Source: Epithemia pelagica
Lineage: Eukaryota; Protista; Bacillariophyta
Reading direction: 5' to 3'
DNA: 64,000 bases
Assembly (NCBI GenBank): GCA_946965045.2
Contig: OX337234.1
Coordinates: 2,170,001-2,234,000, forward strand
In this document: one piece after another, positions 10,706 to 58,464 of the stretch
How positions within the stretch are numbered: the stretch's first letter is position 1
How the letters are laid out: every line of letters begins with the position of its first letter
The notes under the pieces: generated by a model
Seen by the model: only the letters and a program-made list of their open reading frames with translations
Databases searched by the model: none
What the model was told of the DNA's origin: nothing
Position numbers and translations under genes: made by a program

Positions 10706-10885
10706 CCATGCTCTGAAAGGAGTTCAACTACGAGATCGAAACCATCATACACGTCAAGCGCAGTTGTCGCTGCTTTCCCATCAACACGAGACTGACAGAG
10801 CCGCTTTTCTGCGCGGCCAAGGAATCGATTGTTGAATATGGTAATTGGAATGAGCGAGAGGATCGACACTGATTTAAGGTTCGAT

Positions 10886-12254: not shown

Positions 12255-12815
12255 ATGCCAACGACAGGACCAAGACGTCAAAAGTGAAGATTTGTGGAAA
12301 AGTGACAGCTTGTTCGCGTGACGCGCATGATGGCCCGAAATAGTTGGTCGCTGATATGACCTTCCGCGACTGACCCTTTTGTGGATGCATGCAACGCATC
12401 TTGTTGATGACAGTTGAAGACGTTGTTCAGGGAACAATGACTTTGTTCATGGAACAATTCTCAGGATGCAGCAACAATGTCGGGCCGGTTGATGTGCGCT
12501 TGACGGAGCTCGATGAATGCGTCTGGACCTGCACATGATGTGATTTAAACCGGCCTCTTGGCTGTTGCCTCGCATCGAGGTGTCACCAGTCCAACAAACC
12601 GGCCTGTTCGACCTGTTTAAATGCTTGGATAGAGCATTCGATGGAGGAGCTCATAATTTCCCTGTGAAACAAGCATCATCTCTTGAAACGATTTATCAGA
12701 CTGAACGAAGAAAACTCATTGCCTTGGAACCAACGGTGTATCACTTTCTCGATTGAAGCCCCTCCTTAATTGAATCAACGCACTATCAGCATTCATCCAT
12801 CGGTGTTGAGTCAAG

Positions 12816-16285: not shown

Positions 16286-19200
16286 GGGGGAAGTCGCAGA
16301 AGAGGAGGGGAAAGAAAGGAAGAGAAAAAAGAAGAAGAAGAAGGAAAAAAGAAAAAAGAGGAAGAATTAGTTGTAAGATTCCCTTTGCTACGAACGTGCG
16401 ATTGCCACCATCATATTATGATCTCATTGGTTGATCCATTTGTCACTGCTTCTGGTCTGTGTGGGATGTGTGGTGACTACGTGTTGCTCCAATGTCCCGG
16501 TGGAGGGGGATTTGGCAGTTCCCTACGGTCGTTCTACGTATCTGGCTACGGTAAGTGCTGACACCGTGTGTCTTTTACCTATACAAAACATCATCAGCCT
16601 CACATATGCCTTTGATCTCTGATTGTATTGCTTGTGCGAAGATATTGGCATACATTGTTTCCAGTATATCGCGCAATCATAGCTACGGCATGGACGAGAA
16701 GTTTTGCACAGTTTTTGTTAGTTCATTATTTTCTGATCGATGGTTTTCTCACTACTGTTGTTGTTGTCGTCGTTGTTTTTGTTATATCTCTTTAATCTTT
16801 GTCTTAAAGTGTCTGGCCTCCATGGTAAGTCGCGACTGTTGGCTGTTGATGCTGTGTTGATTTTTGCTGCTCTCTAACCGATGTTGTTGTTGTGTTTTAA
16901 GGGTACGATGCATTACTGGGATGGTTGGAACAAGATTTGTCATGGGGTGGGATACCCCGACGATTGGGCCTCTGCCAATACTGAATATTGCAGATGCAAC
17001 AATTTTGAGTCGGTTGTGGATGTGTTGGTTGTTGATGGACCGGTTGGCAACCAAGGTACGACGAGTAATACGCCGCTTGCTGCAGCAGCTGTTGCTGAAA
17101 GTGATGAACACTAGCAAGCGGCGTATTTGGCGGAAGCAATGGTGGAAGTGATGGCATTTGTGGTTGTGGCATGGTGATTGGTCTGGGGGCCGGTTGTATT
17201 GCTGTTCTTGGTGGCGATTTGGGAGCAGGTTGCTGTTGTGTTTGTGGTGGTGGTCGTTGTGGTCGTGTTGGAGAAGACTGTTGCACTGTTGGAGCTGGTG
17301 GTGGCGGCAGCTCTTCCTCCTCATCACTCAACATTGGATCATCGTCATCTTCTTGGTTTGCTTCGTCTTGGTGCTCTTCTTTTTCCTCAACTTGTTGCTC
17401 TTTTTCATTTTCTCGTGATTGTTCTGTATCTTGTTGTTCCAGTGTCTCGCTTGTTTGCATTGTTTCTTCATCTTGCATATTGCGCTGAGCCTCACATTTC
17501 TCACAGGGACAGAAGTCATGCTGTTGGACCAAGATGTTCCAGACCTCGTTGAGTTGCTCATAAACTTGCAAGTACTCAGAAAAAAAGCGTTCGCCATTGT
17601 CTTGCGGTAAGTGCTCGACGTCATCAAACAACTTGGATGCGCCGCATCGAACGGCCAACTTGTTGATAAAGGCAAGTTGCTGGTGGTTCCAATGACTCAC
17701 CACTGTTTCCCACGCCGCAGGCATTTTCTTGTTGCGTTGTTCCGTTGTCTTCGACACAAAGCGCAGCTTGTGTCGAATCTGACGGTTGTACCGCGCCGTT
17801 CCGCACAAGTTCAAGTCGTCCGAGAGTTTTTCATTTGTGCCCCCATTACTGAAATGGGCCAAGTTGTTGTGCCATGACTCCAATTTGGATTCCCCTCGGT
17901 AAGAGACCCATTCGGACAATTGATGGCTTGATTTCGGGTGTGGTTTGATCTCACGATACATGTCTTCGATTGGAATCGGATCTGCGAGAAACTTTTTTAC
18001 AGTTTTCGATTGCTGAGTGTGTATCTTGTGTGAACAATGGTTGTTGTGTCTTGTGATCGAGCCTTCCTCGTGCCGGTGGCCCACTGTCACTACTACTTCT
18101 CACTTTATATTTTATCTTCCACTCCTCCAGGCGCATCACGATTGTTTGGAACGCGCGGATGATTTTCCGTAAGTACTTGCCGTATCTTTCGCGAAAAACC
18201 TTGGTCTGTCTCATTTCTGCTATTTGCTTGTCATTACATTTCTTGCCTCCAAGGGTGCCATTCTTCAGGGCCGTGATGACTTTATGGAAGTCACCATCGT
18301 GATACTCGTAGATGCAATCCAACAATTCGCGCAACGCGTCACCAAAGTCCATGTGTTTATGGCGCAGGGTCTTTATAATTTGCTGGAGGAAATGAAAGAG
18401 TCCCAGTCTTGGGACTACATCTTCACCCAACAATCCAACCCAATAATTGCTCTTGTGGGGGAATGTGTCGGAATAGATGACGCTCGGGTTAAAATTTCCA
18501 CGGCTGCAGAGTTGTTGGGCAGCATGGGAGAAGGTCTTGGTTTCCAAGTTTGGAACCAAGATTGCACATGCAATCTCGCCTACTTCATTGGCAGCATCCC
18601 ATACAGCTTCTGCCTTGAGCCTCTTGGGATAGTTCTTGACTGCTTGGAAGGTGTGGTCTTGGGCAAAACTTGTTTGGCAGCCCACGGCTTGGATTTCCCC
18701 GGTGTGCCTCTCATAGTCACTTGTTCTCCAGGGATTGAGTCTTGATCTTGATGCCTCGTGGTAGGCCTGTCTGATTGTCTCACCAAGAGGAGGATACCTG
18801 GTGAGCCACTCTCCATCTTTCGCTGGATACTCTTGCCCTTGCTGATGTGTTGCATCGCAGAAGGAGTAATAGTTAGTTGTTCTATTCCTATAATCCCTGT
18901 TGATTGCAGCATACAATAGTCCACTACAGTGGTCACCATTGCCATAGGTAAGCATCTCCTCCTCCAACACTGTTGTTGTTGTAATGTCGAAGTGCTGGGC
19001 ACCTCGAGCCCACTTTGCTTCGACTGGATACCATTTCGCAAAATGTGGAGGCAACGAATTGAGAAGTGCTCCGTCGTTGCCGGCATGCGTGGTATTGCAC
19101 TCCTTGCAATGGTAGTGCGTGACAAGGGCGTAAGACGGTGCGCCATCAAGACCAAAAATGGGGAATAGACTTTTGCTCTTGGAAAGGTTGGTCCGCTCGC

Positions 19201-20429
19201 GTTGTAGTGTACAGTTGTTACACTTTGGACACTTAAGCCCAATTTTCTGAAACTCCACCGGCATAAACAGCTCCCAGTCAACAATGTACAAACGTCGCCC
19301 TACAATTGAGTCCCACAGGGCATTATTGTTGTTTCGCACGTCGGGTACAGTCAAACACATGTCGCGCATGAACGGCTTAAGTGACCGCACGTCGCGCTTC
19401 CGTTCCAAACAAGTTTCGGCGATAGTCTTGGCAAGCGCGTACATTGTTTTCGGACACGTGATCGACTCGTCTTGCTCTATCTCCTTGTATTTAGCCAGTA
19501 CCGATTGCATAAATACATACTCATCCGACCCAACGGCGGACATCACCTGATTATTGATCAGGCAGTCCGTGCGCGCAATACAGTTGCGCTTCCCCTTTCG
19601 AACCCTGGAAAGTTTCAAATCGTCCTCTGTCACGGTCGTTGCTTCATTTGAAGCTTCCGAGACAGGTTTATTGTTGAGACAAAAGAAGAGGTTGAAATCT
19701 TCTTGCCTCATGATGATTGGATGGTAAGTCACTTCCTTGTTGGCCTCTTTCTTCAGTCGTTCCTCCTCCTTCATGGCCTCTACCAAGTGGTCTGGTATGC
19801 CCCTGGTCTTTGTGTTCTTCGGGCAGAAGACGTGATGGGGGCGCTTGGGAGGCTTGGTCCCAAGCCTTTTGGAACTGCAGATGGTGCAGTCCCTGTCTGG
19901 CTCAAAGGCCTTTTTCTTCTCAAGCGTGAGCTGCCTCAACTGCTTTGCCTCTTGTTGCTTCCTCTTCTTGTTGCTTCTCTGTTGTGCTAACGACTTTGCC
20001 CTTTTTGTTTGGTTGTTTCGTCGTTGACTCTGCCCACCCATCTCTTGCTCCTTGCTGAGCTTTTTGTATGGGTTCACCACCAAGGGTGCTGGTGGTGGAG
20101 GAGGAGAGTCATTCTCCTCAGGGACAGTCATCGTGGTTGGGTCCATTGTCGCTCCAGAAACATCGACACCATTGTCCATGTCCTGGGGCACGGCAACCGC
20201 GACCGGCCTCATTGGCACGGAATCGTGTTGGAGACGAAATCCCTGTCGTTTCGGCTGTTTTCGTGGGGAAGTCGGCAAGATTCCGTGGCTTTTTGCGCGT
20301 GGCGCGCGATGTCTACTGGTAAGAGAAGACATGTCTTGTGTGAGTTTTCGTTAAGTATTTTGATGTCTTGTCTATGTCTTGTGAGTTTTCTAACCCAATC
20401 ATATTTCTGCCTTCTATTTCGTGAGCCCC
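16286..20429 (-). mobile_element. Putative DNA transposon copy 1 (large Cys/His-rich DDE-like transposase); ends tentative
   Basis: Bounded by TA|GGGGG (16284-16290) and CCCC|TA (20426-20431). Terminal regions share motifs with copy 2. Confidence 0.5.
16897..20332 (-). pseudogene. Large DDE-like transposase (Mutator-like/DUF6729-associated type), frameshifted near 17995
   Basis: ORFs 17951..20332 and 16897..18090 together are colinear with ORF 21075..24809. Motifs: CTIC...HHVFC, CPKC...CKEC, FAQDHTF, IYSDTFP, LGLFHFLQ, RGESKLESWH, ARYNR. Confidence 0.72.
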
Positions 20430-20441
20430 TATTGCGAAAAT

Positions 20442-23400
20442 GGGGGGGGCCAAGGCAGAAGAGAGAAGGGAAAAAGGGGAGGGAAAAAAAGAGAGGAAGA
20501 AAAAAGGAAGAGATTCCCAACGTTCAAAATGGTAAGATTCCGTCGTTTTCTGCATCCTAGTCGGTTTCACTCTCATTGGCTGAATTACCATGTCTTGTCT
20601 AACCCTTGCATCTGGTTTAACTCTCTGTCATGAGGGGCGAAGGCACCTCCCCTTCAATCACCATAAATGATTTTGGTCTTAGTTCAGAAATTTCTGTGCT
20701 TACATCAGTGGTCAACGCTCGACGAACGTACAAGACGTCTGTCCATGGTAAGCTTCATGTGTGCTCTGTACGTCGATCGTTGACACAAAAATCTACCGAA
20801 AGATCGCTCTCATAATTTTTGAACAGGCATGTTTCTAACTCATTCTTCATCTTATGTTTTAGTTCTTCTTATTTCAGGTATACGGGTCGTCTCATCCTAA
20901 TGGTTTTGTGTCTTTTTCTTCTTTGTGGTGTGGTGCATGGGTTTGGTGTGATGGATTTCTTGGTTTTCCTTTTTGTGCTTGAGCCACATCCGCCATGATA
21001 TTTCGGTGATGTGGCTGGATCCTCCTTCCTGCCAGCAACGGCAAAATGGACAAGCCATTGCCATGGACAATCCATCAAGGCTTCTTGGTATTTTTGTTGG
21101 GGCAGTCTTTGTTGTGATGAGGTCTCCCACGCTTTCCATTCTCGAAGTATTCAAAATACTTCGGACAACAGAATTGCCGTTGGTTTCGTGGGGTTGGCCG
21201 CATCCAAGTTGTGGTCGCGGCATGGTGCTGCTGTTGAACTAAATTTGGCATCAGCAACGATAGAGCCAAAAGTGTTTGAGCCAATGGCCCACTTGCTTGG
21301 CTTGTTGTCATTGTTGTAAGTTCTTGTTGTGCATGTGTTGTGTTTGTGGTTGTGATTCTTGCTGGTGTGCTGGTGATTCTGTCGTTCTTGTTGACTGTTC
21401 CAAAACCAGAGCTGAATCGTGCACTATTTAGTTGTTGCATAATCTCACGCCTATGTTGTGCTCTTTCTTGTTCTTGTTGATTCTCTTCTCTCATTTGCTT
21501 CTTTGTTTGACTGGTGCTACTTTCTTGGTGACGTGCTTCCCCAGCCTGTTCTTGTTGTTGTGCTTGTGGAACCAGCGGCCGAGTCTCACTTGGTTCTTGC
21601 TCACCCACATTCTTGATGTAAGTACTCTCCTCCTGTTGAGGCTCACTGTCACCAGATTCCATTGTTGTTATCGTCTCCTTCTCACTGGCATTTTGGTTTT
21701 TCTGTACATGCTGCTCTTTTTCGGATTCGACTGCTGTTGGATTTCCCACAATCGGAACACACAACAACCCCTCACTCTGATTGTTTGGACTGCTTTTGGG
21801 GGAATTGCCGTCCTCACTCTCATTTTTCTCATTCTCCTCTCTCTTGTCATGCTCATTGTCTCGGTTTGTTTCATCACTGTTATTTGATGGTGTCCTCTTT
21901 CGGTACGGGTTAACAATCATCCCCTGTACTGTTTGGACTGGTGGTAGTGTTGAAAGAGTAGGTGCTGGTGGTGGGTGAAAGGACTTGTCATGGGGAAGGC
22001 GCACAACAGACTTGGCACACAAGCAACACTGACAGCGGTCATTGAGTGGATGCTTCGGAATCTCCAATTTCCGTCTGCTCTGTTGTGCCAAGTATTCCGA
22101 AAAAAAGCGTTCACCAGTGTCTTCTGGTAAGTTTTCAACCCATTGAAATTGTTGTTGCGATCCAGAACTCACAGCCATTTCATTGATGAATCGCAGTTCA
22201 GTGTGGTTCCAATAAGGAACCACACATTCCCATCCGGCTGGAACAAGAGATCGCTCATCAAGAGTCATTGCAAGCAATCGATGCTTGAATCGAATGGTAA
22301 GATTGTAATGCGCTGTTCCCTGTAGGTTAAGATTGTCTGCAAGGCTCTCACGCATTCCACAATTTGCAAAGTTTGCCAGGTTGTCGTGGAAGCTCTCCAA
22401 CTTGGATTCCCCTCTGACTGCAATGTATTCAGGTAAGGAGTGGCGTGAATTCTTGTTGGCTGCAACTGTCAAATACATGTCTTCAAGTGGTAGTGGATCT
22501 GACAAATACACTGCCTTTTGTTTGCAATTTTCTATCGCGAGATGAGTATCCTCCGTAAATAGAGGTTGATTTGTCCGCGGATCTCGTCGACCTCTTGCTG
22601 ATGGCTTGCCTGGTGTGGCAGTGACCTTATAGGTCACTTTGAATTCTTCCAGCTTCGCAATGATGACTTCTTTCGAGCGGATCATTTTTCGTATGTACTT
22701 TTCATACCTTCGTCCAAACTCTGGAGTGTCGAGCAGATCCTGTATCTCACCCTCAGTGTATTGTTTCTTGCTACTTGACATTTTTCCTTCTTTCAGCGCT
22801 TGAAGGACATTATTCATATCCTCATCATTATACTCATACAGGGCCATTTTGAAATCACGGAGTGCTCGCCCATAATCAATGTGTCTTGGTCGCAGAGTCT
22901 TCACAATTCTCTGCAGGAAATGAAACAGGCCGAGGCAACCCTTCACCTCGTCACCCCAAATCAAGACCCAGAAGTCAATGGAAGAAGGCCATGTATCAGT
23001 ATACATGGCCTTCGGACAAAACCATGGCCGACGAGCAAGCTGTTCGACAGCATGGCTCACCTCCTGGATTTTGGTATTTTCAACGAGAATAGCACAGGCA
23101 ATCTCACCTTTTTTGTTGGCTACGTCAAACAGGGCCTTTGCCTTACAGGCTGAGGGATAGTTTTTCACTGTCTGGTGAGTATGATCATTTGCAAATGTTC
23201 GTTTGCATCTCACCATTTGCATTTCTCTCGTGTGTCTATCATGATCCGACAGACCCCACCAATTCCAATTGGAACTAGCCGCATCGTCATACAGCTGACG
23301 GATGGTGTCACCTTGTGGAGGGAAGTTGACCAGCCACTCGCCATCCTTTTTGGGATAGTCCTCACTTTTTTGGCCAGTGGATGCACAGAATGAATAGTAC

Positions 23401-24894
23401 CTCGTTTGTCTGTCTTTGTAGTCTGTATTGATACCACTGTAGATCATTCTAGAAAAATAATCTCCATTGCCGTAGGTCAGCATAGAGTGTTCTAGCATGT
23501 GGGTAGCATCTCGAGTAAGATGTGCCATCCCACGAGCGTACTTTGGCTCCACAGGGTATGCCATGGCCATCCAAGGTGGGAGTTTTGCTAAAAATCGTCC
23601 TTCATTCCCTTGGAAGCATGTTTTACATGCCGAGCACCTATAGTGCATGACAATGGCGTATCTTGGGGGACCAGAGCTTCCGAATAGGGGGAAAAGACAC
23701 TTGTTTTTGGAGAAATTACTCCGTGTCCGATGGAGTTTACCATTGCATAGAGGGCAAAAGAGTACTTCTCCAGGAAAAAAGAGTTCCCAATCCACAACCA
23801 AGAGTTTCTGGCGAGAAAACGAGTCGTACAAAGCACACGTGTTGGTAGCGCAGGCCGGTACACAAAATTCCATACCGTCAAAGAAGTTTGATAGCACACT
23901 CGTATCACGCTTTGTCCCCAGGCACGCTTCTTGCATAAATGAGGCAAGCGCATGCATTGTCTTGGGACACGTGATACCGTTGAATGTACCATGTGTAACC
24001 CTATGTAATATTTCCTTTTTGAAATTTTCAGCCGACATGCGCAGCTCTGTCACTGTCACACTTTGACCGTTGCTGATTTCGCCCATTCTCCCTTCTGCCA
24101 ACTTCTCACCTGTCAACGACTCTAGAGTGAGTTTTCCTGGGTTCAACACTTTTTTGGCCGTATTGGGACGCGGCTTCATGAAGTCCTCCCAGTCCTCCAT
24201 GGTGATCCCTGGTCTGTGCTTTTCAGCTTCAGACAATGGTTGTTTGTTGTTTCTTTCCCTCTCCTTCGCTGCTTTATCCACCAGTCTCTTGATCTGTCCC
24301 AGTTCGTTTGTCTTGTGTGGTTTTCCCTTTGTTTTGGTGTTGAGTGGACAGAGCATGTGGTGGGATCTGTGTGGTTTGGGGAGGTTGTTGTGTTTGGCTC
24401 TACACACACAACAATCAATCTCTTGTTGAAACTCCACGACTCCGGTAAGTGTTTGATAACCAGAGCGTCGTTGTCCGTGTCGAACAGGGAGTCGACTATA
24501 CAAGTTGCCCAGCCGTTGCGACTGGGGACCCATTGCTGCTCTTGCAGCACTTTGTGCTGCTGCAAATGATTGCACAGCACCAGAGGATGACCTACTAACC
24601 ATCTTTATTCGATTACGTTGTCTACAGGTCTGAGATGGCCAGAAAGTGGTCAATGTCTTGTTGTCGTCTTGTGTTTTGTCGACAATGGCGCGAGCGACCG
24701 CCTCGATCGGCTGATGGAATCCAACTTGGAGGTTTTTTTGGTTTTTTTCTTGCTGCCAATCCGTGATTCGGGGCCTTCGTGGGATTGGTTTTAAATCGAG
24801 GTAAGACATTTTTAACTCGTTTTTCGTTAAGTGTTTAATTGTTGTGTGACATGTCTAACCCAATCATATTGCTGCCTTGGAAAACTAACACCCC
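20442..24894 (-). mobile_element. Putative DNA transposon copy 2; ends tentative
   Basis: Starts with a G-run plus CCAAGGCAG (20442-20458) and ends with CTGCCTTGG...CCCC (24872-24894). No TSD seen. Confidence 0.45.
21075..24809 (-). CDS. Intact 1244-aa DDE-like transposase, paralog of 16897..20332
   Basis: Uninterrupted ORF. CCVC...HHMLC, CPLC...CSAC, FANDHTH, MYTDTWP, LGLFHFLQRI, RGESKLESFHDNL, C-terminal CC...RPHHNKDC. Confidence 0.75.
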   Translation of the reverse strand: MSYLDLKPIPRRPRITDWQQEKNQKNLQVGFHQPIEAVARAIVDKTQDDNKTLTTFWPSQTCRQRNRIKMVSRSSSGAVQSFAAAQSAARAAMGPQSQRLGNLYSRLPVRHGQRRSGYQTLTGVVEFQQEIDCCVCRAKHNNLPKPHRSHHMLCPLNTKTKGKPHKTNELGQIKRLVDKAAKERERNNKQPLSEAEKHRPGITMEDWEDFMKPRPNTAKKVLNPGKLTLESLTGEKLAEGRMGEISNGQSVTVTELRMSAENFKKEILHRVTHGTFNGITCPKTMHALASFMQEACLGTKRDTSVLSNFFDGMEFCVPACATNTCALYDSFSRQKLLVVDWELFFPGEVLFCPLCNGKLHRTRSNFSKNKCLFPLFGSSGPPRYAIVMHYRCSACKTCFQGNEGRFLAKLPPWMAMAYPVEPKYARGMAHLTRDATHMLEHSMLTYGNGDYFSRMIYSGINTDYKDRQTRYYSFCASTGQKSEDYPKKDGEWLVNFPPQGDTIRQLYDDAASSNWNWWGLSDHDRHTREMQMVRCKRTFANDHTHQTVKNYPSACKAKALFDVANKKGEIACAILVENTKIQEVSHAVEQLARRPWFCPKAMYTDTWPSSIDFWVLIWGDEVKGCLGLFHFLQRIVKTLRPRHIDYGRALRDFKMALYEYNDEDMNNVLQALKEGKMSSSKKQYTEGEIQDLLDTPEFGRRYEKYIRKMIRSKEVIIAKLEEFKVTYKVTATPGKPSARGRRDPRTNQPLFTEDTHLAIENCKQKAVYLSDPLPLEDMYLTVAANKNSRHSLPEYIAVRGESKLESFHDNLANFANCGMRESLADNLNLQGTAHYNLTIRFKHRLLAMTLDERSLVPAGWECVVPYWNHTELRFINEMAVSSGSQQQFQWVENLPEDTGERFFSEYLAQQSRRKLEIPKHPLNDRCQCCLCAKSVVRLPHDKSFHPPPAPTLSTLPPVQTVQGMIVNPYRKRTPSNNSDETNRDNEHDKREENEKNESEDGNSPKSSPNNQSEGLLCVPIVGNPTAVESEKEQHVQKNQNASEKETITTMESGDSEPQQEESTYIKNVGEQEPSETRPLVPQAQQQEQAGEARHQESSTSQTKKQMREENQQEQERAQHRREIMQQLNSARFSSGFGTVNKNDRITSTPARITTTNTTHAQQELTTMTTSQASGPLAQTLLALSLLMPNLVQQQHHAATTTWMRPTPRNQRQFCCPKYFEYFENGKRGRPHHNKDCPNKNTKKP

Positions 24895-48096: not shown

Positions 48097-48491
48097 TCAT
48101 TGACGGCAACGGAAGGGAAGACTAACATTTGCAGATAGGAGTAGGAGTAGGTTACACGGTAACTTATCAGGCTACTTTTTGGTGCGGGGGGCAGGTGCGA
48201 GTGCGAGGGGGGACTCCAAATCTAAAAATTTAGCGCGGGCGCTCGCAAAAATTGCGTGCAAGTCACTGCGGGCATGCAAGGGCTGCGAGGGCAACGATTT
48301 ACCGCACCAAATACCCCCAAGTAGGGGTGAGTAGGTAGTCGCACATGTGTCGTGTATTCTGGCGAATTGTATACTCACCCCCACGGCGCGGCCACCCAGC
48401 TCTCGAGGGTGATACAAAACTCCAAACACCACATGTATAATCCCCTCATTCATCACAGTGGTGGAGGTGCAGTAGCCCTATATCGCATCCA

Positions 48492-51400
48492 ATGTCGTCG
48501 TCTTCCTCCCACAAACGCAAACGACTCTCTCAAAAAGATGCCAAGGCAAGGTTCTCAACGCACCATGCCTCCGCAAGGTTGTCCCTTCCTACAACACAGG
48601 TCGTCGATAACAGCATCGCCGAAAACAACAACACAACGTCGTCTCCCCAAGACAGTTCTTCATCGCCACCAGAAGCCTCTTCCCTACGTGAACCGGTACC
48701 ATTCCGTCCATACACGATGCCTCAAGCGCTGAGAGCCCAACAACGGACAAAACCTCCCCCGAGCAATCTATCAGAGCCGTCTACTACGTTCATGGATAGT
48801 GCTGCGGCAACAAGCTCCCTATCGACGACGCCACACTTTCAGCGTGCCATTGCTCCCGCACCTTTCCAATTGACTCGCTTTCAGTCCATGCCTCCGCCTG
48901 AACCTTCTCCCTGCTATCAAAATCAAAACCAAGAATCAACCAATTCTTCGGCTCAGCAAAGAACAAAGATTTCGGCGGCGTCTTTTCACCTTCTGCATCG
49001 CCGCGATTCATTCGGCCACGTGCAATTCGGCACCCAATCTTCCCTGACAAAATCCTTTAACCTTTTAGGAATGATTGAGGCTGCGAAGAATTCCCCAGAC
49101 GTGGTACCTGCCATTGTTGGAGCTACTCATCCCCAACAAGAAACGAATGTGACAAATAGTACAACCAGCCACCCAACCAACGAAGCCTCCAACAACCAAA
49201 ACGAAGCATCCAGTTCCTATTCCGTCCCGACCGCTGTTGCCCCGCCGTCTCCTCCTGCCGTCAATCCCGATGATAGTGATTCCTCATCTACATCCATGGA
49301 ACTTTTACAGCAACCGGACCCAGTTGTTCAACCAGCCACTCTCCATCCAAATTTGAAACTACAACTGAAAAAAGTAAAAGAGGGATCGTTCTTGGTTCCC
49401 ATTCGGCGCCATCCCCAGCTTCCCTGCGTCGACGCTGGTGAAGCACTCACCAAAAACCCACCAATGGTGATTATTACACAAACTCCGGAGAAGAGGACAG
49501 CAAAAGCTTTGAATTTGGTGTCGAATTTCTGCGGACCCATGATGCGTAAAGCCAAGAATTTCACACGGGGCGGCACTCGGTCTCCGACGGGGACACACAA
49601 ACAACGACGATACCACAAAGCAAAGAAGCGCAGGCTTAGTGCTGACGACGCGGCACCATCGACCTCGTCATCTACAGGGCCTCAGAATCTGCAAATGGTC
49701 AGTTCCTTTGCCATGCGGACGATGTTTGTCGAAGATATTTGGTTCCTCCAAGAAGACCAAGCCATTATTCTGTTTTTCAACGATGACATGCTTCCCCCTC
49801 GGTATTCCAAACGTTGGACAAAAGTGTGGAAAGACACTCAGCAATGTAACTATGTCCCAACTGTTATGTTTGACGGACGGTCGTACAAACAGCTGTGCGG
49901 TTGGGTCCACAACAACAAGGCGGCCAAAAAGAAAATTTGTGAAGATAAACCTTATAAGGTCCTTGTTGAGGCTATGAATGAAACCTCGCAGAACGGTGTC
50001 TACCTCAAGTTTCCAATGTTTTCCCCGTCCAATCACAACATCACTTCTCCCCCTTTGGAGTGCTACAAACAGCTATTGTCATGGTTTGAGATCTTTACAT
50101 TCCCACAGTCCATATTTATCCAGGCTGACTACCATCCCGAACGTAATTGGGCAAGCATTTTCAGCCGTTTGAAAGAAGAAGGAGGGGACAGACTCACATT
50201 GCTACATAGAATTATACAAGAGACTCCAGGCGATCGATACGTACTATCAGAGTTGCGCCATGTGTGGGAGCGCTTGCGCCTGAATGCAGGTGTCTGGAAA
50301 GCCCGTGATGAGTTTATTGGAGTCAATCTGAAGCTACAAGAGGCTGAGGCAAAGGTTGCAGCTGACCCCCCTCCTATAATTGACCCCAATCTGAAGCCAG
50401 TCCAGAAATTCTGCAAGCTACTGGATGAGACTCTCTGGAAACGCATGGAGGATTGTTTCGGGAGCTTTAATCACTTGTTCGAGAAGTTTCTATCACAATT
50501 GGAAATTCGACGCCTCGCTGTTGAATTTGAGACAATGCTACCGCAACAATTCAACACTTTGATGGCAATCAGTGGATACAACCGAAAGCTAGAGCTGGCT
50601 TCTCCTAAAAACCGTGATTTTCTACGCGCAAGATTCACCCTAGATGTCCTGTTCCAGTTCATAATCCGAGCCCGTAAGCACAATAACCACATGCTTGTGC
50701 CTTTTGGGATGCTCTTTGCCATGGCACAATATGCGTGTGGCCACCCACTGCTTGCGACACAAATCCCAATATGGCTGGGAATATCAGTGTCGAAGCGCAC
50801 CATGGAACGACGAATCGAGCCGTGGTTGCAATCCTACGACAATCGCGTCAAGATGGCACTCCGCAATGTTACAAGCCTCCTTTGCGTGTTCGATAATCTT
50901 CAGGATGGACGTCGCCTGCAATTTCAGCAGGGACAGAGTTCTGTTTTCACTCGCGTGACGGCTCGTTTTGTCATGTCAATGTATCTTTCCCGTCACCCTA
51001 CGTGGGTGTATTCCTACCTTGAAAGACCGAAGCTCACGTATATCCAACAAGCTATACCGGCGTCCTATCAAATGCCGGCATTGGAAGTGACAAAGGATTC
51101 AAACTTGGCTGATGTATTGAGATCTGTTTTCCTGGGCACTTACCCCGATGACCTTGAACAAGAAGGGAATCCATTTGATTGTTCAGGGGTTCGAGTGAGA
51201 ACACACCAGCAGATAATCGGTTGGTGCAGGGAGTTACGAGCAATCAAACGGTACATGTCAACAAAGCGACGAAAGGGATATAAGGTGGATTATACTCTGC
51301 AACCACCAGAGTTTGCTATCAATCACGCAAGAACTACCATTTGTGAGGCAATGCACCATTTGCGCAAGGATCGCGACTCTAATGTGTTCCAGATGGCGGC

Positions 51401-53453
51401 AGAATTTCAGCGTCGTGTTATAAGGACGTGGCGGTATCTTCCTCCCGTTGCTGAATTGCTGATCCTCCCTGTGTCCGTTCTGGACGAAACAACTAAAACC
51501 GGTGCAACGGGCATTATCCTGGACTTCATGGTCCTGCATGGCCTTCTGGAGTGGGATCCAAGAACTGCTATGTATTGCCATGGAAGCAGTTGGGAAGACA
51601 AATGGCTCTTCATCGTTGGCGATGGTTTGTCAATTGATAGAATCTTTCAATTCTTCGATGACAACATGGCAATCACCGACTCTTCTGTATCATCCTACAG
51701 AGCCGCCTACCGCCAAGCCATGACTATATCTCAGGTGGTGCATCGAGTGGTTCCCATCAATGGGGACTTGCATGTTCGTTTCCACATGCTTGATGCAATT
51801 TACCGCCTCTTTTATGGCGGCTTCCTACAATGCATGCAAGTACGACTGAAATGGAAGCGACTCAATGCTTCTGACGTGTCTAAGAGTTACCGCCTTGCGC
51901 ATCGATTGGCAATGTTGGTCTTCGAAGAGGTGGACAGAATCGTGCTAGATATCTTTGTGTACAGGACTGTGTCCGAGGAAACAGTGGACGGCTATTTACA
52001 CCATGGACAGGAAGAAGAATTGGCTGTATTTTTGGCACAGGGATATAGAGCGTATCTCGAGCGTCAGGTCCGTGAAAGCAAGGATTGGTTGCATCGATAC
52101 CTTTGCAATTATCTACTTATCATTCGGAAATACTCTACTTTCTTGGAAGCGGAGCAACAAGGAGACGCATTGACAATGGAATCTGTTGTGGTGGAGTTTC
52201 TTCCTGTGTTCTATATCACAAAGAAAAAGAACTCCTGCAATACGCAACTTAGGCTCGTTGAGCTTTACTACAACCGACTGCCCATTTCGATCTTGCAACA
52301 AATCCGTTTGAACCAAACCAAAAGACAAAAGGAAGGAAGCGGTCCGTCCATGGTGGCGAAAGAAAGTGCTTTGGACCAGATTATGGAGCGGCTCATGCCT
52401 TTCTTCAAAGGCGTGAGCCACAGTGGGACAGAAGCATCCTTCATCAAGGTGTCGAAGATGCTGACAGTGTGTCAGCGTGCAAAATATTTTGTAGAATACT
52501 ACACCAGGAACAGAGTAGACAATACCACATTGCAAGTACATAAGAAAACCAGACGATGTGGCAATGGGAAGGTTGAAGCAGACAGTACTCATGAATATGT
52601 CATGGTGCAAGCGACAGGGATGGTAGGCAGTCTGACAGAGACTGGTGACGAGGAGAACCAGTCCGAAACAGGAAACAAGAATGATGACGATTCAGAAATC
52701 GACTTGGAGCAGGCTCTGAAAGAACAAGATGATGATAAGTCGGTTGGAGAGGACTCTGTTTTCAGTGAGGACGAGATTGCTGTTGTTGAGATTGAATATG
52801 AAAATGAGTTTGGGGGAAATGAGACCAATGAGACCGTGGAAAAAGATGTGACCGTAGAGAATGATGAAGATAATGACAACGAAGAAGACGCTGTAGTGGA
52901 TGATGACAACAATGGCGGCAATGTATCGGATTCTCAAATTCCTGAAACACAGGTGGAGGACGTCATTCTGGACGATGCAGAAGAACTTGACAACGAGAAT
53001 GATGAAGATGCAGATGAAGATGTAGACGACTTGGGTGAAGACGGAGACAGGGAGGAAAGTGGCGGGGATGCGGCATCGAGTAAAAAGGATGACAGTGTTG
53101 AAGATGAAGGTGCTACATCAAGCAAGGACGAGAAGTTGGTGGAAAAGAAAAAGCTCAAAGGCATGAAAGTTGTGGAACTCAACAAACTTGCAACAACGGA
53201 TGTTATATCGCATGCACTGGAGGAGATCAGTGAGAAGAATATTATTTCTGGAAGAGAATGGGATACCTCTCGTAAGGAAAGAGAGCACCATTTCCTCCGG
53301 TACAAATTGTTTTGTAGGCTTGAAGAAATGGAAGAGGAGGGAACTGGGTTGGGTTGGAGTACTCAAAATGACTGTGAACTGGAGGTAACTCAACGACTTG
53401 ATCGTTCCTTATCTATGTTTCAACGATATAAGAAATCAAGAGGAAAGAAGTAA
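48492..53453 (+). CDS. Academ-type (DUF6589-like) transposase, 1653 aa
   Basis: CVFDNLQ, ILPVSVLDETTKTG, FIVGDGLSIDRI, GDLHVRFHMLDAIY, ALDQIMERL. Low-complexity N-terminus and acidic C-terminal tail. Confidence 0.8.
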   Translation: MSSSSSHKRKRLSQKDAKARFSTHHASARLSLPTTQVVDNSIAENNNTTSSPQDSSSSPPEASSLREPVPFRPYTMPQALRAQQRTKPPPSNLSEPSTTFMDSAAATSSLSTTPHFQRAIAPAPFQLTRFQSMPPPEPSPCYQNQNQESTNSSAQQRTKISAASFHLLHRRDSFGHVQFGTQSSLTKSFNLLGMIEAAKNSPDVVPAIVGATHPQQETNVTNSTTSHPTNEASNNQNEASSSYSVPTAVAPPSPPAVNPDDSDSSSTSMELLQQPDPVVQPATLHPNLKLQLKKVKEGSFLVPIRRHPQLPCVDAGEALTKNPPMVIITQTPEKRTAKALNLVSNFCGPMMRKAKNFTRGGTRSPTGTHKQRRYHKAKKRRLSADDAAPSTSSSTGPQNLQMVSSFAMRTMFVEDIWFLQEDQAIILFFNDDMLPPRYSKRWTKVWKDTQQCNYVPTVMFDGRSYKQLCGWVHNNKAAKKKICEDKPYKVLVEAMNETSQNGVYLKFPMFSPSNHNITSPPLECYKQLLSWFEIFTFPQSIFIQADYHPERNWASIFSRLKEEGGDRLTLLHRIIQETPGDRYVLSELRHVWERLRLNAGVWKARDEFIGVNLKLQEAEAKVAADPPPIIDPNLKPVQKFCKLLDETLWKRMEDCFGSFNHLFEKFLSQLEIRRLAVEFETMLPQQFNTLMAISGYNRKLELASPKNRDFLRARFTLDVLFQFIIRARKHNNHMLVPFGMLFAMAQYACGHPLLATQIPIWLGISVSKRTMERRIEPWLQSYDNRVKMALRNVTSLLCVFDNLQDGRRLQFQQGQSSVFTRVTARFVMSMYLSRHPTWVYSYLERPKLTYIQQAIPASYQMPALEVTKDSNLADVLRSVFLGTYPDDLEQEGNPFDCSGVRVRTHQQIIGWCRELRAIKRYMSTKRRKGYKVDYTLQPPEFAINHARTTICEAMHHLRKDRDSNVFQMAAEFQRRVIRTWRYLPPVAELLILPVSVLDETTKTGATGIILDFMVLHGLLEWDPRTAMYCHGSSWEDKWLFIVGDGLSIDRIFQFFDDNMAITDSSVSSYRAAYRQAMTISQVVHRVVPINGDLHVRFHMLDAIYRLFYGGFLQCMQVRLKWKRLNASDVSKSYRLAHRLAMLVFEEVDRIVLDIFVYRTVSEETVDGYLHHGQEEELAVFLAQGYRAYLERQVRESKDWLHRYLCNYLLIIRKYSTFLEAEQQGDALTMESVVVEFLPVFYITKKKNSCNTQLRLVELYYNRLPISILQQIRLNQTKRQKEGSGPSMVAKESALDQIMERLMPFFKGVSHSGTEASFIKVSKMLTVCQRAKYFVEYYTRNRVDNTTLQVHKKTRRCGNGKVEADSTHEYVMVQATGMVGSLTETGDEENQSETGNKNDDDSEIDLEQALKEQDDDKSVGEDSVFSEDEIAVVEIEYENEFGGNETNETVEKDVTVENDEDNDNEEDAVVDDDNNGGNVSDSQIPETQVEDVILDDAEELDNENDEDADEDVDDLGEDGDREESGGDAASSKKDDSVEDEGATSSKDEKLVEKKKLKGMKVVELNKLATTDVISHALEEISEKNIISGREWDTSRKEREHHFLRYKLFCRLEEMEEEGTGLGWSTQNDCELEVTQRLDRSLSMFQRYKKSRGKK

Positions 53454-55598
53454 TGCATAAGTAAGTTCGTGTTTAGATTCACCATCGTCTGATTGGTCCT
53501 TTTCAATGAACAAAAAGCCTACCCAAGCACTGACATCGTTCAACCTCGGGTTGCCATTATTGCAATAGCCCAGCTTTGCTCGTAAATGGTATCCATCAAC
53601 CTCCGGCTCCAGTATCCCGGCTGCAAAGCATTTTAGAATTAGGGCTTTCGTCCTTGGACGGGCAGTCTGCACTGTCTTCACGCCAAATACAGCTTTGTGA
53701 AACTTTTTGATTGGCTTTCCATCAGGGCCAGAATTCAGGAGTTCATTCAAAAAACAGTCACGGTGTAGAGACAATTGTGATGCAGGGAGCTTTGAAGTGA
53801 TGAAGATTGCGACAAGATACTCCTTAAAGTGATCTTTGTTAATGCGACAATCAAGGGGGGTCGAAACGGGTGCCACGGAACAACGCCAACAAGCACCGTC
53901 ACAACATTCATCCATGTCATTTACAGGAACCACATATGGATGCAACATGAGTCGTTCCAATTGATAATGGATACATTGACCGTTATCAATGCAGACAAGG
54001 TACAGGACTTCCTTTAATTTCTCCCATTGACGCTTAGCCAGTTCTTCCATTGACAATGTCGTCGTAGTAGGGGCTGAGGAAACTGATGTAGAAGCATCTG
54101 TGGAGTTGGTTGTAGCTTCTTTCGTGGCTTTAGCAGCTTCGTATTTAGGAATGATGAATATGCGAGTCATCAATGCTACAAGACTGTTGAGCGAGATGAC
54201 CATTGTGAATGATGAGTTCCCTGGATGTGCTTCTGGACTCCGACCACACCGTCCTGAGCATTGGAGGAAAACTTCTATCGTAGCCGGAAAGCCTTGAAAT
54301 ATGACTTTGTCGACCTCTTGACAGTCCAAACCAGAACTCGTAGCCCCAGCAGTAGCAAAGAGGGCCACCGGATCAAATCGCAACGGAAGCCCAGTAGTGG
54401 GACATTCGTCCAACAAAGGTTTGCCGATGAACATATCAGTGTGGTGAAATTTCTGCTCTCGGTACATGTTTCCATGTACCAAGAGTAGATCTTTCTGTAT
54501 ACCCGCAAGATTCAACACATTCCGGCTCTTGTTATACAAATGGACAGTGCCTTTGCGTGAATTGGAGTATACAATTAACTTCCGGCCACCCGGGGTCCGG
54601 CAAAGCTTAAGCAATTCCGATTTGACTCGTCGGTGAGGTGAGGCGTTGAGGGAGATATCGAGGAAAACATTCCGGCGCTGCACTCCAGAATGATATTGGG
54701 GCCATAGCATGTCGTTTGTAGGATGGACAGGTAAACCGGTGAGTTGCTCCAGATCTTGCACCATAGACTTGGAGGCGGCTGCTGTCATGAAAAGAACTGG
54801 GATGGGATATTGAATTCGTTTTTCAACCAGCCGAAACAAAAATTTTCGAAGCTCTCCGAACTCCTCTCTGAACTCTATACCATGGGCGGCATAGAGGTGA
54901 CATTTGTCAACTGCAAGCAACCGTAGGGTACCATTCATACAGCATGCTGCAATGGTCTGTTGCCAATGGGGGTCTTTTGTTATCTTTTGTGGTGAAGAGA
55001 ACAAAGACACAATGGTTTTGCAATCGGCGTCGTTTTTCAGTTGCTCGAGGTGGTTCCGCAACTCTTCGTTTAAGGATGTGGAGCGTATAACGTCAAGGTT
55101 GAAGACTTTAAAGCGGTGGAACGAAGTCTGATCGATGGATAGTTGAAGGAGCTTGGAGGTTTGGTCTGCGGCCAAACTTAGCAAAGGAACAATTGTTAAT
55201 GTGATACCACCACATAGAATCCCCGTGATGTCCCGAACAGCAGATTTCCCACCACCAGTGGACCGGACAAGAAGAAGAGGGCGGAGCATACGGTCGGGAG
55301 GGGGTTCAACATGTCGTCGAAGGAGTTCTGCACATGCAGTAACTTGCCAATGGCGGGCTGTCTTGCCATGCCAGTCGGTGAAAGCTTGCTTGATTGCATC
55401 GTCTGGGGAAGTGACATCGTCGTCATCATTGGGAGGAAGGATAGGGGTGTTAGAAGGCATTTGATTTGACGGAGGAGGTTGGGAAAGGCTTGTTTTGTAT
55501 GGGTCAGAGCCGCCTTGAGTGAAGAACGGAAGCATGGGGTGGATTGGTGGACTGGGTAACGTGAAGGAACCTTTCGGTCGCGAAACCGGGACTCCCAC
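53436..55598 (-). CDS. RecQ-like SF2 helicase of the element, with a variant Walker B (start uncertain)
   Basis: WQVTA, RSTGGGKS, IVPLLSLAADQ, SSPQ, AVDKCH, FMTAAA, IVYSNSR, ATSSGLDCQEV, QCSGRCGR, RecQ-type Zn motif CCDGACWRC. Confidence 0.88.
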   Translation of the reverse strand: MGVPVSRPKGSFTLPSPPIHPMLPFFTQGGSDPYKTSLSQPPPSNQMPSNTPILPPNDDDDVTSPDDAIKQAFTDWHGKTARHWQVTACAELLRRHVEPPPDRMLRPLLLVRSTGGGKSAVRDITGILCGGITLTIVPLLSLAADQTSKLLQLSIDQTSFHRFKVFNLDVIRSTSLNEELRNHLEQLKNDADCKTIVSLFSSPQKITKDPHWQQTIAACCMNGTLRLLAVDKCHLYAAHGIEFREEFGELRKFLFRLVEKRIQYPIPVLFMTAAASKSMVQDLEQLTGLPVHPTNDMLWPQYHSGVQRRNVFLDISLNASPHRRVKSELLKLCRTPGGRKLIVYSNSRKGTVHLYNKSRNVLNLAGIQKDLLLVHGNMYREQKFHHTDMFIGKPLLDECPTTGLPLRFDPVALFATAGATSSGLDCQEVDKVIFQGFPATIEVFLQCSGRCGRSPEAHPGNSSFTMVISLNSLVALMTRIFIIPKYEAAKATKEATTNSTDASTSVSSAPTTTTLSMEELAKRQWEKLKEVLYLVCIDNGQCIHYQLERLMLHPYVVPVNDMDECCDGACWRCSVAPVSTPLDCRINKDHFKEYLVAIFITSKLPASQLSLHRDCFLNELLNSGPDGKPIKKFHKAVFGVKTVQTARPRTKALILKCFAAGILEPEVDGYHLRAKLGYCNNGNPRLNDVSAWVGFLFIEKDQSDDGESKHELTYALLLSS

Positions 55599-55906
55599 AC
55601 CTTCTTGTATGTATAGAAGGTAATCCCAAGTGGTTTAAAGAGAGATTGAAACGTTAGCAGTGGAACAAAGGGACCTCGGCAAATTGGCACCGTGGTGTTT
55701 GTGTTGAGGTAGAAGGAGTTTTGTATCACCCTCGAGAAATCGCCAAATTTGTCTGCTCGCGCCATGGACACAGCGCACGATCAGGTATGTGTCAGTTGTC
55801 CAGAAAGCGGGCTGGCGCGCGCCTGCGCGCAAGAAGAAAATTCGTCGGATGCAACACGGGTTATCGTGGAAAACCATGGTGCTTTAGAGGTCGGTCCGAA
55901 ACCCTA

Positions 55907-55999
55907 AACATGTACCTTTTTCCATTCGAAACCTTACAATCGTCCCTATGACCATGGTTGGACTGGTTGTTACCTTTCGAATGGAAAAAGGTACATGTT
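55907..55999. repeat. Perfect 25-bp inverted repeat with a 43-bp spacer
   Basis: AACATGTACCTTTTTCCATTCGAAA (55907-55931) and TTTCGAATGGAAAAAGGTACATGTT (55975-55999). Confidence 0.9.
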
Positions 56000-56176
56000 C
56001 TGACCTTCATTTTCTACTCGATATTGTGTACAAGGTGTGGTGCGTTGCGTGGGATGGTTGGATGGAGTGTCGCGTCCCGTCCCGTTGTATCGATCGAAAC
56101 ACATCCGACGCCAAGCCGTATTTTCTCTAAATGCAAAGAAGTAATAAAATTATGCATACGCTATAGTGTTGTATTT

Positions 56177-57259
56177 CTAGCTATTAGAGTCGATAGGACA
56201 ATTTGCCTCCTGACAAGTGTGGTACAAGAGCAAAGACAAAGTCTCAAATGATGACCGTTTTGGGTGTCGTGACAAAAGTGGCACCGGTGGTTTCGGGGAA
56301 CCAGGTTCAAGGATGTGATCGCCACGAACGATAATTTTGTGGACATGTGGTTGTTGGGCCAGCCATTGATCGAATCGAACCACCGAGCTCTTTTTCTGAC
56401 TCCCATCCATGGCAAAATCACCCAAATGCAACAAGACATCACCATCCGGTAGACTTGTTCTGTCTTCTTCATTGGCCAAGGTTTTTTCAACTCCATGGGT
56501 ATCGGAAATCACCACCAATCCCAAGGACGTGGAATTGGGAAGGACATAATCGGCCGTTGCTGCCGACGACGAGATCAGGCCATCCACGACAAAGGGAGAC
56601 GACGACGACGACAAGGGCATGGAATTCTGAATCCACGATGTCTGTCCGTATGCTCCAGGTCGAGGAGTATAATGATTGGCATTGTATTGAAATACATGAG
56701 CCATGGCCATGTTGGCTGACATCCTGGTGTTGGTGTTGGTTGATGTTGTTGTCATGGTCGTGTTGGTATCGGACACAGTTGTACCATTGGTGATATTGAG
56801 ATTGTGATTGGAAAGGTCAGTGGCATTGATCCATGCCGTAGGAGGACATGCAGCGACTTGTTCTTTGAGTTCACGTCGCCATCGTTTGGCCAAAATGACG
56901 CGATCACCCGTCTTTTCTTTGCGACTCATGGATTTGCGCAATTTTTCCCATCGGGCCAACAAGGCCGTTTATTGTTCCGGGGACAGTCGTGGTGCTGGTC
57001 GTGGCAAGAAGGATTCCGTTGGTGGTTGTGGATGATGATGACCACCGCCAAAGGCTTGTTGCGGTCCTTGTTTCAAGACATCAGCCACGACTTGATTCAA
57101 CAAGGGCGATGAGGATTTGAGCAATTTTTCTCGCAAGGATCGTACCTTGGCTTTGAGCTACCAATGTGGTGGAAACCCAGTGGCGACGACGAGGATCCAA
57201 AGCATCCTGGAAACCAAGGCTGGACCCAACGACGACGACCCAAACCAACCGGAAGTCAT
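56177..57259 (-). pseudogene. Captured calcineurin-like metallophosphoesterase gene fragment
   Basis: LVVISDTHG, DVLLHLGDFA, KIIVRGDH. In-frame stops at 57158-57160 (TAG) and 56969-56971 (TAA). Probable frameshift after GDH. Confidence 0.75.
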
Positions 57260-57451
57260 CGAATGGCCAAGTCCTCGGAACATGCTATAAGAACTGAATG
57301 GAGCTGTTTGTTGTGTTCACTTGACAAGGAACTCCTTTCAAGATCGGGTTGCCTCAGCTCTTCGGTATTCCTCGTCACTGGATGATACGGCAACCACCTT
57401 TCCGTCTCCGACTGTATCAACTGACTTTTCGGTTGGAAAGTAGTATTAATA

Positions 57452-57621
57452 CTTCCCGGTGTTGAGTCCTTTCAAGGAGGGACCGCCCGGCGCGGAGGGT
57501 AGAATGACGAGGAGGGCAATGGTCGAGGAGGGCGCACGCCCGACAAGACAATTGCCCGTCGAGTCATTCTCCCGACAAGCCGGGCGCGCCCGACGCGAGA
57601 CGACGGCCAGACACAGGGAAG
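57452..57621. mobile_element. Possible tiny GC-rich MITE flanked by TA
   Basis: TA|CTTCCCGGTGT ... ACACAGGGAAG|TA, an imperfect 11-bp TIR. Confidence 0.35.
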
Positions 57622-57677
57622 TAGTAAACTTACTCCCTATCAAGCTGTGTAGGTAGTGAGAAATTCCTGGAAGCCAT

Positions 57678-57728
57678 GTCACAAAGTGTCACACAAGTGT
57701 CATACAAGTGTCACACAAGTGTCACACA
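57678..57728. repeat. Tandem repeat, 11-bp unit GTCACACAAGT, about 5 copies
   Basis: Read directly from the sequence. Confidence 0.85.
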
Positions 57729-58464
57729 CGAGAGGGAAACCGCGCGACTCGCACGAAACTACTTCCCGGTCGTACAAAAAATTCCTACTGTAGTATAAAA
57801 ATGTGAGACGAACTACTGGTATGGAGTTAGAATGCCAATAGATCCAACGCAGAACAACAACTCGGATGGCTTTGATGGTCGGTCCGTGGAGAGTGCAGAG
57901 GTAGAGGTGTGTTACTTTCTCTTTACTGACTAATTGTCAGTTAACTGAGAATGTAAGCGTAACACTCTAATTAAGCCCCACCACATACCTGATCGTGCGC
58001 TGTGTCCATGGGGGTGAGTATACGAATTGTGCAAAATACACGATTCATGCGCGACCAGACAACTCACCCCTGCTTGGGGGTACCGCGCCAAAGCTGAAGA
58101 GTATCGGGAATCGTCTGTCATTCTATCCGTTGAAGCACACTCGCATGACAAAACTACGGATAACTGTTAAGTTTCTAGTAGGAATGTTGATGCGAGTGCG
58201 GGGGCTTACCCCCCGCACTCGCACCTTCACCCGCATCAATGTTCCGGTGATAAGTTAGGAGTAGTGTGTTACTCCTAGGATAGTTGCAATAGTACGCCGG
58301 GTTCCTGTAGTTAGCTCGGGTAGAGAGATGGTGGTGGGACATACAGACAAAGAGAATATCCCTCTGGGTGAGATGAGAGAGAGGGAACGACGATGGGGAA
58401 GACTTAGCCAAAAGAGATTAAGTCGAAAATCGAATAGATGCATTTGCTCGAACACTTACTGGCC

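Follow-up and report, generated by a model that had tools for sequence, protein, structure and literature searches.

The window (the whole 64,000-nucleotide stretch of Epithemia pelagica contig OX337234.1) carries between positions 48160 and 58257 a long transposase open reading frame (ORF) on the forward strand, a convergent gene for a RecQ-like helicase, and several sets of inverted repeats (Table 1). A sequence-only reading had taken these features for one full-length AcademH-like transposon with cargo, bounded by short matching termini. Comparison with other copies in the same genome, domain searches and structural modelling supported the AcademH-type two-gene transposon, with its DUF6589 DDE transposase and convergent RecQ-like helicase, and revised its extent. 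The region very probably consists of three nested transposable elements in diatom intergenic space, namely the transposon itself, a miniature inverted-repeat transposable element (MITE)-like repeat around it and a non-autonomous element inside it.

Termini and target site duplications of the transposon

The ends of the transposon were set by its paralogues. At least 12 transposase relatives (clusters at 90% identity) were identified. They all lie on 0.1-2 Mb contigs of one ENA assembly, ERZ21939226, from which eight loci (L001-L008) were fetched. In pairwise comparison with the paralogues L002 (92%) and L003 (~68%), similarity of the window was confined to 48308/48312-58082. The element therein ends in TACCCCCAAG...CTTGGGGGTA, with the terminal inverted repeat (TIR) starting TACCCCCAAG inward from both sides. 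Target site duplications of 9-10 bp were found precisely at the TACCCCCAAG...CTTGGGGGTA ends in eight insertions, the window copy and seven others of the same genome, with lengths of 10, 10, 9, 10, 9, 9, 9, and 10 bp; their sequences varied between insertions and were perfect in the non-window copies, while the window consensus was CCGCRCCAAA. The boundaries originally proposed, 48160 and 58257, were consequently replaced by the true ends at 48312 and 58082, 150-175 bases further in. Duplications of the size given for AcademH in the sequence-only reading, and stated in the literature (Kojima 2023, PMC10045372), were thus present at 48312/58082 and in seven more insertions but not at the ends first reported, and the retrieval of other genomic copies gave insertions ending in TACCCCCAAG rather than TAACTTATCA.

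The matching termini described previously do exist, TAACTTATCA occurring exactly at 48160 (+) and 58257 (-), but they are not the ends of the transposase-bearing element and the pair lies within chance (2 matches found versus 2.46 expected with at most one mismatch). No target duplication was present at 48160/58257, where the ten bases outside the left end read GGTTACACGG and those outside the right end GGAGTAGTGT. The direct repeat TAGGAGTAG, 9 bp long and located near both ends (48136-48150 and 58256-58264), was considered as a duplication for these ends and rejected, being offset from the left terminus, overlapping the right one and forming part of a hexamer repeat.

The TIRs of the element were imperfect, roughly 80-125 nt long, and organized in three boxes: a terminal one, CTCACCCCCATGGCGCG at ~60-80 nt, and TCTCGAGGGTGATACAAAACTCC at ~90-125 nt. 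In the seven copies that were aligned, boxes 1 and 2 were kept without exception in the left and the right TIR. Box 3 was present in the left TIR of several copies and, in inverted orientation, at 55715-55737 of the window. The inner and outer parts of the right TIR, separated in the window, were contiguous in L002. An inverted pair, GGGGTGAG(nn)/(nn)CTCACCCC, its halves ~40 nt apart, was observed in each TIR (window 48312-48391 and 58003-58082, and the ends of L003-L008) and is conserved between subfamilies; single-strand folding joined the GGGGTGAG and CTCACCCC halves in 8/10 TIRs, the structures being thermodynamically weak (z -0.7 to -3.9). In L008 (positions 9348 and 10158), a second, diverged TIR-like sequence, TACCCCCTAGCGGGGGTGGC, lay ~800 bp upstream of the left TIR that is flanked by the 10-bp duplication; the gene call at this site reads through the TIR, and the sequence may be the remnant of another copy.

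Two copies of 7809 bp, L005:9829-17637 and L006:9829-17637, were 100% identical. Their 9-bp flanks were reciprocally swapped, one copy reading AATGGAGCG/element/AGTGACCGG and its counterpart AGTGACCGG/element/AATGGAGCG, as would be produced either by reciprocal exchange between two recent insertions or by an assembler switch within the repeat.

Table 1. Features of the transposon-bearing region (window coordinates) and target site duplications of the other genomic copies.
Feature	Position	Strand	Size	Details
AcademH-like element	48312..58082	+	9771 bp; 7533 bp minus nested insertion	Limits from paralogue similarity
Left target site duplication	48302..48311		10 bp	CCGCACCAAA
Right target site duplication	58083..58092			CCGCGCCAAA; 9/10 identical to left copy
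Left TIR	48312..48423	+		Box 1 TACCCCCAAGTAGGGGTGAG; box 2 ACTCACCCCCACGGCGCG, ~48374-48391; box 3 TCTCGAGGGTGATACAAAACTCC, 48401-48423
Right TIR, outer part (boxes 1, 2)	58006..58082	-	77 nt	82% identity to inverted 48312-48386; 98.7% to L002 right TIR
Right TIR, inner part	55715..55767	-		Box 3 and right-end-specific spacer with AAATTTGGCGATT; cut off from outer part by nested insertion
Transposase ORF	48492..53453	+	1653 aa	Uninterrupted; conserved core ~residues 400-1400
RecQ-like superfamily 2 (SF2) helicase ORF	53436..55598	-	720 aa	Convergent; overlaps transposase ORF end by 18 bp
Outer MITE-like repeat, left half	48160..48311			Terminus TAACTTATCA; TA target duplication possible
Outer MITE-like repeat, right half	58093..58257			
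Nested TIR element	55768..58005		2238 bp	Unrelated, non-autonomous; 24-bp perfect TIRs ACACAGCGCACGATCAGGTATGTG; CCATGG on each side
Small repeat inside nested element	57436..57831		~390 bp	Other copies at L007 24158-24541 and L001 19203-19591
L002 duplication			10 bp	GGGCTTCATA
L003 duplication			9 bp	TTGGTTGCT
L004 duplication			10 bp	TGGAGCTCTC
L005/L006 duplications			9 bp each	AATGGAGCG and AGTGACCGG
L007 duplication			9 bp	TGAGTCCAT
L008 duplication			10 bp	GGCAATTGGA

Transposase, helicase, and family assignment

The two genes predicted by the sequence-only reading, an uninterrupted DUF6589-like ORF of 1653 amino acids (aa) and a convergent RecQ-like ORF of 720 aa, are both present and gave matches in the profile searches it had proposed. 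The 1653-aa protein matched Pfam DUF6589 with 30.8 bits against a cut-off of 27 (residues 942-1256). DUF6589 was likewise above cut-off in 6/7 family members and in all eight distant relatives scanned, and a profile search retrieved 723 representative clusters at E ≤1e-3. One of the eight distant relatives (P0300) displayed a DEAD match C-terminal to DUF6589 within one gene call. Pfam scans identified no XPG domain in the window ORFs or the eight distant relatives, no MULE or SWIM match in any member, and no hAT, P, or Helitron match.

A PDB sequence search with the transposase profile yielded a chance match only, and the fold was approached through an AlphaFold2 model of residues 620-1400 (781 residues) built on 46 aligned sequences, with a mean predicted local distance difference test score of 86.9 and a predicted template modeling score of 0.85. 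Exhaustive structural alignment with VIA-align returned nearly exclusively RNase H-like DDE transposases and integrases as top matches, including Hermes (Z 7.6), the P element (Z 7.3), and the IS256-type ISCth4 (Z 6.1), as well as retroviral integrases, Tn5, RAG1, Transib, Sleeping Beauty, and MuA. The protein thus models as an RNase H-like DDE transposase with a large all-helical insertion domain. The proposed DDE triad would comprise D801 (FDNLQ; conserved in 38/39 sequences) in the first strand, D1044 (GDGLS; 45/45) after the fourth strand, and E1299 (ALDxxxE; 41/41) in the helix that follows the ~180-residue helical insertion domain; the residues after the second D read G-D-L-H and not C/DxxH. 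The predicted architecture resembles that of hAT (Hermes) and P elements in having an RNase H-like DDE core whose fifth strand is separated from the helix with the catalytic Glu by a large helical insertion, although sequence similarity to them was undetectable and neither has the accessory helicase found here. The duplications of hAT and P elements are 8 bp long.

The 720-aa protein matched Pfam DEAD and Helicase_C. Its best NCBIfam matches were RecQ models (E 1e-19), with 69.7 bits far below the cut-off of 640, and its PDB sequence matches all belonged to the RecQ family (BLM, RECQ1, E. coli RecQ, RECQ5, and WRN). No Pfam match to the RQC and HRDC modules was obtained for this protein, and a conserved C-x3-C-W-x-C motif followed the helicase core. 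On these sequence matches it is best called RecQ-like. The transposase and the convergent helicase were paired in all fetched diatom copies, and the same pairing was found in the ~20%-identical relatives L009, L010, and L011. The metagenome loci L009 and L010 carried the complete two-gene unit with 25-bp TIRs and an 8-bp duplication. A further ~20%-identical relative is a DUF6589 gene of Skeletonema marinoi annotated as hypothetical protein KAK1733536.1 (L013; GCA_030871285.1, JATAAI010000048.1, ~7618-13095), with an adjoining truncated convergent helicase remnant and TIR-like GCACGCTGTAGTCCTCGGTTT ends resembling those of L009 and L010. An MMETSP transcript fell in the protein cluster of this S. 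marinoi relative. The distant homologues were for the most part unnamed metagenome proteins, with names attached only to Skeletonema marinoi proteins and an MMETSP transcript.

The stramenopile origin of the contig, on which the claim of a new host depended, was borne out by the flanking GMP synthase gene. Its named top matches were all from diatoms, including Epithemia clementina (92%), Phaeodactylum (86%), Thalassiosira, Mayamaea, Pseudo-nitzschia, and Fistulifera, and several further top matches were unnamed metagenome or assembly proteins (84-92%); the host is accordingly a diatom. In the biofilm metagenome run X4, three short contigs of low depth were 99-100% identical to the element (window 48383-51665), which suggests that the organism, or a close relative with this copy, lives in that biofilm.

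Academ is among the least studied cut-and-paste superfamilies, and the AcademH elements published so far come, to our knowledge, solely from animals and fungi, with Academ as a whole also known from one red alga. Searches of the accessible literature found no report of Academ in diatoms or stramenopiles; one paper mentioned DUF6589, with no transposon link, and none was found that equates DUF6589 with Academ. In the ESM Atlas, DUF6589 clusters were distributed among Basidiomycota, Mucoromycota, Cnidaria, and Rotifera, overlapping with groups for which Academ or AcademH has been reported, namely basidiomycetes (rusts included), Mucoromycota, and cnidarians. AcademH generates 9- or 10-bp duplications and AcademX 3-4 bp (Kojima 2023, PMC10045372), and AcademH helicases comprise DEAD and Helicase_C (PMC10799480). 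The present element resembles AcademH by its large DDE transposase and separate SF2 (DEAD/Helicase_C, RecQ-like) helicase gene, TIRs, 9-10-bp duplications, lack of an XPG nuclease, and low to moderate copy number, and differs from it by a diatom (stramenopile) host and by long TIRs (~80-125 nt) with three conserved boxes. With AcademX, in which an XPG nuclease is fused to the transposase, it presumably shares the transposase superfamily, whereas the XPG domain and 3-4-bp duplications of AcademX were not found here.

Other superfamilies were compared as well. The duplication length fits MuDR elements, which give 9-10-bp duplications, but no MULE or SWIM Pfam match was obtained and a MULE lineage is unlikely. 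Helitron was rejected given the presence of TIRs and duplications and a helicase that is RecQ-like rather than PIF1. Kolobok elements have TTAA 4-bp duplications, 5'-RR...YY-3' termini, and a C/DxxH signature, their lineages have recruited RecQ helicases independently, and they are known in a diatom (PMC9587614). KolobokH and Kolobok-1_CCri are similar to the present element as DDE transposons with a RecQ-type helicase, which in Kolobok-1_CCri is also on the complementary strand (PMC9587614). In contrast, the duplications here were 9-10 bp and varied, the termini were TA...TA, and the motif was G-D-L-H; TTAA, RR/YY, and C/DxxH were not found, and Kolobok/KolobokH was rejected on duplication, termini, and signature alike.

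Surrounding and nested repeats, alleles, and decay

The sequences 48160-48311 and 58093-58257 are the halves of a separate, repeated MITE-like element of ~317 bp within which the transposon landed. Contigs from three DNA runs of the organism (X1-X3) were aligned to 48100-54099, and each run held a contig that matched up to 48311 and then ran on as GCTGAAGAGTATCGGTAATCGTCTGTCATT, which corresponds to window 58093-58122 with one mismatch. Past 48311 this uninterrupted contig begins GCTGAAGAGTATCGGTAATCG, with a single copy of the 10-mer, and amounts to an empty site at a paralogous position. Other contigs diverged into varied flanks before 48152-48159 and before 48312, the pattern that further copies of two distinct repeats would give, and the contig pile-up on 48100-48299 was far above that on the element interior (contig depth here is not a copy number). 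The separate MITE-like repeat follows from the uninterrupted contigs, the two break points, and the pile-up; it has imperfect TIRs of its own at 48160-48232 and 58191-58257.

The 2.2 kb previously interpreted as cargo are a later insertion by which the right TIR was cut in two. In the paralogue L002 (92% identity), the positions that correspond to window 55767 and 58006 adjoin each other via a single CCATGG, and the nested element is absent; due to the palindromic target, duplication lengths of 2, 4, or 6 bp are all possible. Inverted repeats of 24-30 bp span 55762-91 and 57982-58011. Pfam scans identified no transposase domain in the nested element, the sole domain match being a marginal one to Metallophos in an ORF at 56177-56962 (-). 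With this, all major inverted repeats of the region were resolved. The layered subterminal inverted repeats noted earlier are real in that several collinear inverted repeats are present, but they do not belong to one element, being split among the outer MITE TIRs, the element TIR boxes (48312-48386/58006-82), box 3 (48401-23/55715-37), and the nested-element TIRs. The ~390-bp repeat inside the nested element reads TAGTATTAATAC...GGTATGGAGTTAG. On the second haplotype, represented by L001, the repeat was located exactly at the equivalent of window 58257/58258, beside the MITE end. The window reads TAG-GAG-TAG at this point, and may either bear the footprint of an excision there or merely lack the repeat.

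The locus of L001 is that of the window, with shared flanking TPR, GMP synthase, and ATP12 genes and a sequence identity of 99.35%. Each variant was found in the sequencing runs that held the other, so the two sequences represent two haplotypes; the window copy is an old insertion on both. The alleles differed by 28 nonsynonymous and 7 synonymous changes (transposase 18:5, helicase 10:2), and with L002 as outgroup 25 derived changes were assigned to the window copy and 14 to the other allele. The latter carries Q1183*, D1044N, a 4-bp deletion, and a second stop. In the helicase, motif II is DKCH (Lys232) in the window copy only, all remaining members and the second allele having DECH, and motif III is TAA in the window copy in place of TAT. 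Between the window and L002, the ratio of nonsynonymous to synonymous substitution rates (dN/dS) was 0.18, and between subfamilies dS was saturated with dN of 0.25-0.39. The allele comparison indicates that both alleles of this insertion change neutrally. Taken with the dN/dS of 0.18 and the saturated dS, these neutral allele differences indicate a lineage that was under selection while active and an insertion that has decayed since. The description of the window copy as full-length therefore holds for its ORFs but not for the motif II glutamate, replaced by lysine, nor for the split right TIR, and both alleles appear neutral. From the loss of the motif II glutamate and evolution without selection, the window copy is probably no longer autonomous; it may still be mobilisable in trans, as each of its TIRs retains an undamaged outer 77 nt. 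Other genome copies, including the two that are 100% identical, look recently active.

Elsewhere in the window, ORFs of 793 and 1244 aa at 16897-24809 (-) gave weak DUF6729 and CxC5 (KDZ-transposase-associated) matches and mark a different transposon-like region.

Competing explanations and significance for the family

The reading of the region as three nested elements implies an order of events. A repeated ~317-bp MITE-like element with TAACTTATCA termini would already have been in place when it was hit by a cut-and-paste transposon of AcademH type, 7.5 kb in length, whose insertion duplicated 10 bp of target (CCGCRCCAAA), and a 2.2-kb non-autonomous TIR element would then have inserted into the inner right TIR of the transposon. 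The transposase would recognize the conserved terminal TIR boxes, excise the element, and integrate it at target cuts staggered by 9-10 bp, and the helicase may serve as an accessory factor unwinding end or target DNA. One undivided element of 10.1 kb, with TAACTTATCA ends at 48160/58257, long layered subterminal repeats, and ~2.2 kb of cargo to the right of the helicase gene, would account for the exact inverted 10-mers at both ends and for a further collinear inverted block 25-27 nt inside them. That explanation is highly improbable: the TAACTTATCA ends lack a target duplication, the other insertions (7/7) end at TACCCCCAAG with 9-10-bp duplications, the outer sequence is uninterrupted in contigs, and the supposed cargo is missing from L002 and has perfect TIRs of its own.

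For the three-element reading, the family of the central transposon is a question of its own. The element is very probably AcademH-like, an assignment resting on the two-gene architecture, the 9-10-bp duplications, the failed Kolobok and Helitron tests, and the taxa of the DUF6589 clusters. An alternative is a helicase-carrying DDE superfamily distinct from Academ, in which case DUF6589 proteins would not be Academ transposases and the two genes and 9-10-bp duplications would resemble those of AcademH by convergence; the absence of a Pfam family matching Academ as of 2017 (PMC5751038), the accessible literature without a DUF6589-Academ equation, and the independent recruitment of RecQ helicases by Kolobok lineages (PMC9587614) would accord with it. 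It is nevertheless rather improbable, as a large DDE transposase with an SF2/RecQ-like helicase and 9-10-bp duplications is exactly the combination that defines AcademH, and DUF6589 clusters occur in phyla with reported Academ or AcademH. Membership of another named superfamily, whether KolobokH, MULE/MuDR, or Helitron, is barely credible. The RecQ helicases of KolobokH and Kolobok-1_CCri and the diatom Kolobok (PMC9587614), the duplication length of MuDR, and the structural match to ISCth4 speak in its favor, and the varied duplications and TA...TA termini, the G-D-L-H motif, and the lack of MULE, hAT, P, and Helitron Pfam matches speak against it, with TIRs and duplications ruling out Helitron.

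Several results weigh against the nested AcademH-type reading. The equation of DUF6589 with the Academ transposase is drawn from architecture, duplication length, and cluster taxa and not from curated Academ sequences, and the metagenomic relative L009 has an 8-bp duplication instead of one of 9-10 bp. Foldseek with the 781-residue model gave nothing significant against the PDB, the structural Z-scores are all below 8 (maximum 7.6) so that the predicted fold depends on the coherence of the match list, and the catalytic triad was placed by conservation and secondary-structure position, not by coordinates. The element sequence was present in no RNA run, and BLAST over ~240 kb of fetched loci recovered no second copy of the outer MITE.

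A more far-reaching possibility, and a doubtful one, is that the diatom elements constitute separate, deep-branching Academ lineages that carry a helicase: one in this pennate diatom, with TACCCCCAAG termini, and a second, ~20% identical and with CACRCTGTAG termini, in Skeletonema marinoi and metagenomes. If this were true, the transposase-RecQ partnership would predate the opisthokont/stramenopile split or have crossed between these groups, the family would still be mobile in diatoms, as the two identical 7809-bp copies would indicate, and the inverted GGGGTGAG/CTCACCCC pair could be a helicase-exposed hairpin for end recognition.

Setting those separate lineages aside, the AcademH-like element represents a known kind of transposon recorded from a new host. 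For the window itself, the practical value is a corrected annotation, with three nested elements in place of one element with cargo, and relatives of the transposase are shown to sit as unrecognized hypothetical proteins in the public Skeletonema marinoi genome. The diatom copies widen the host range of AcademH to stramenopiles and have defined TIRs, 9-10-bp duplications, and two genes that both bear signs of purifying selection. As sequence-defined and apparently recent copies, they offer material for probing the role of the helicase.

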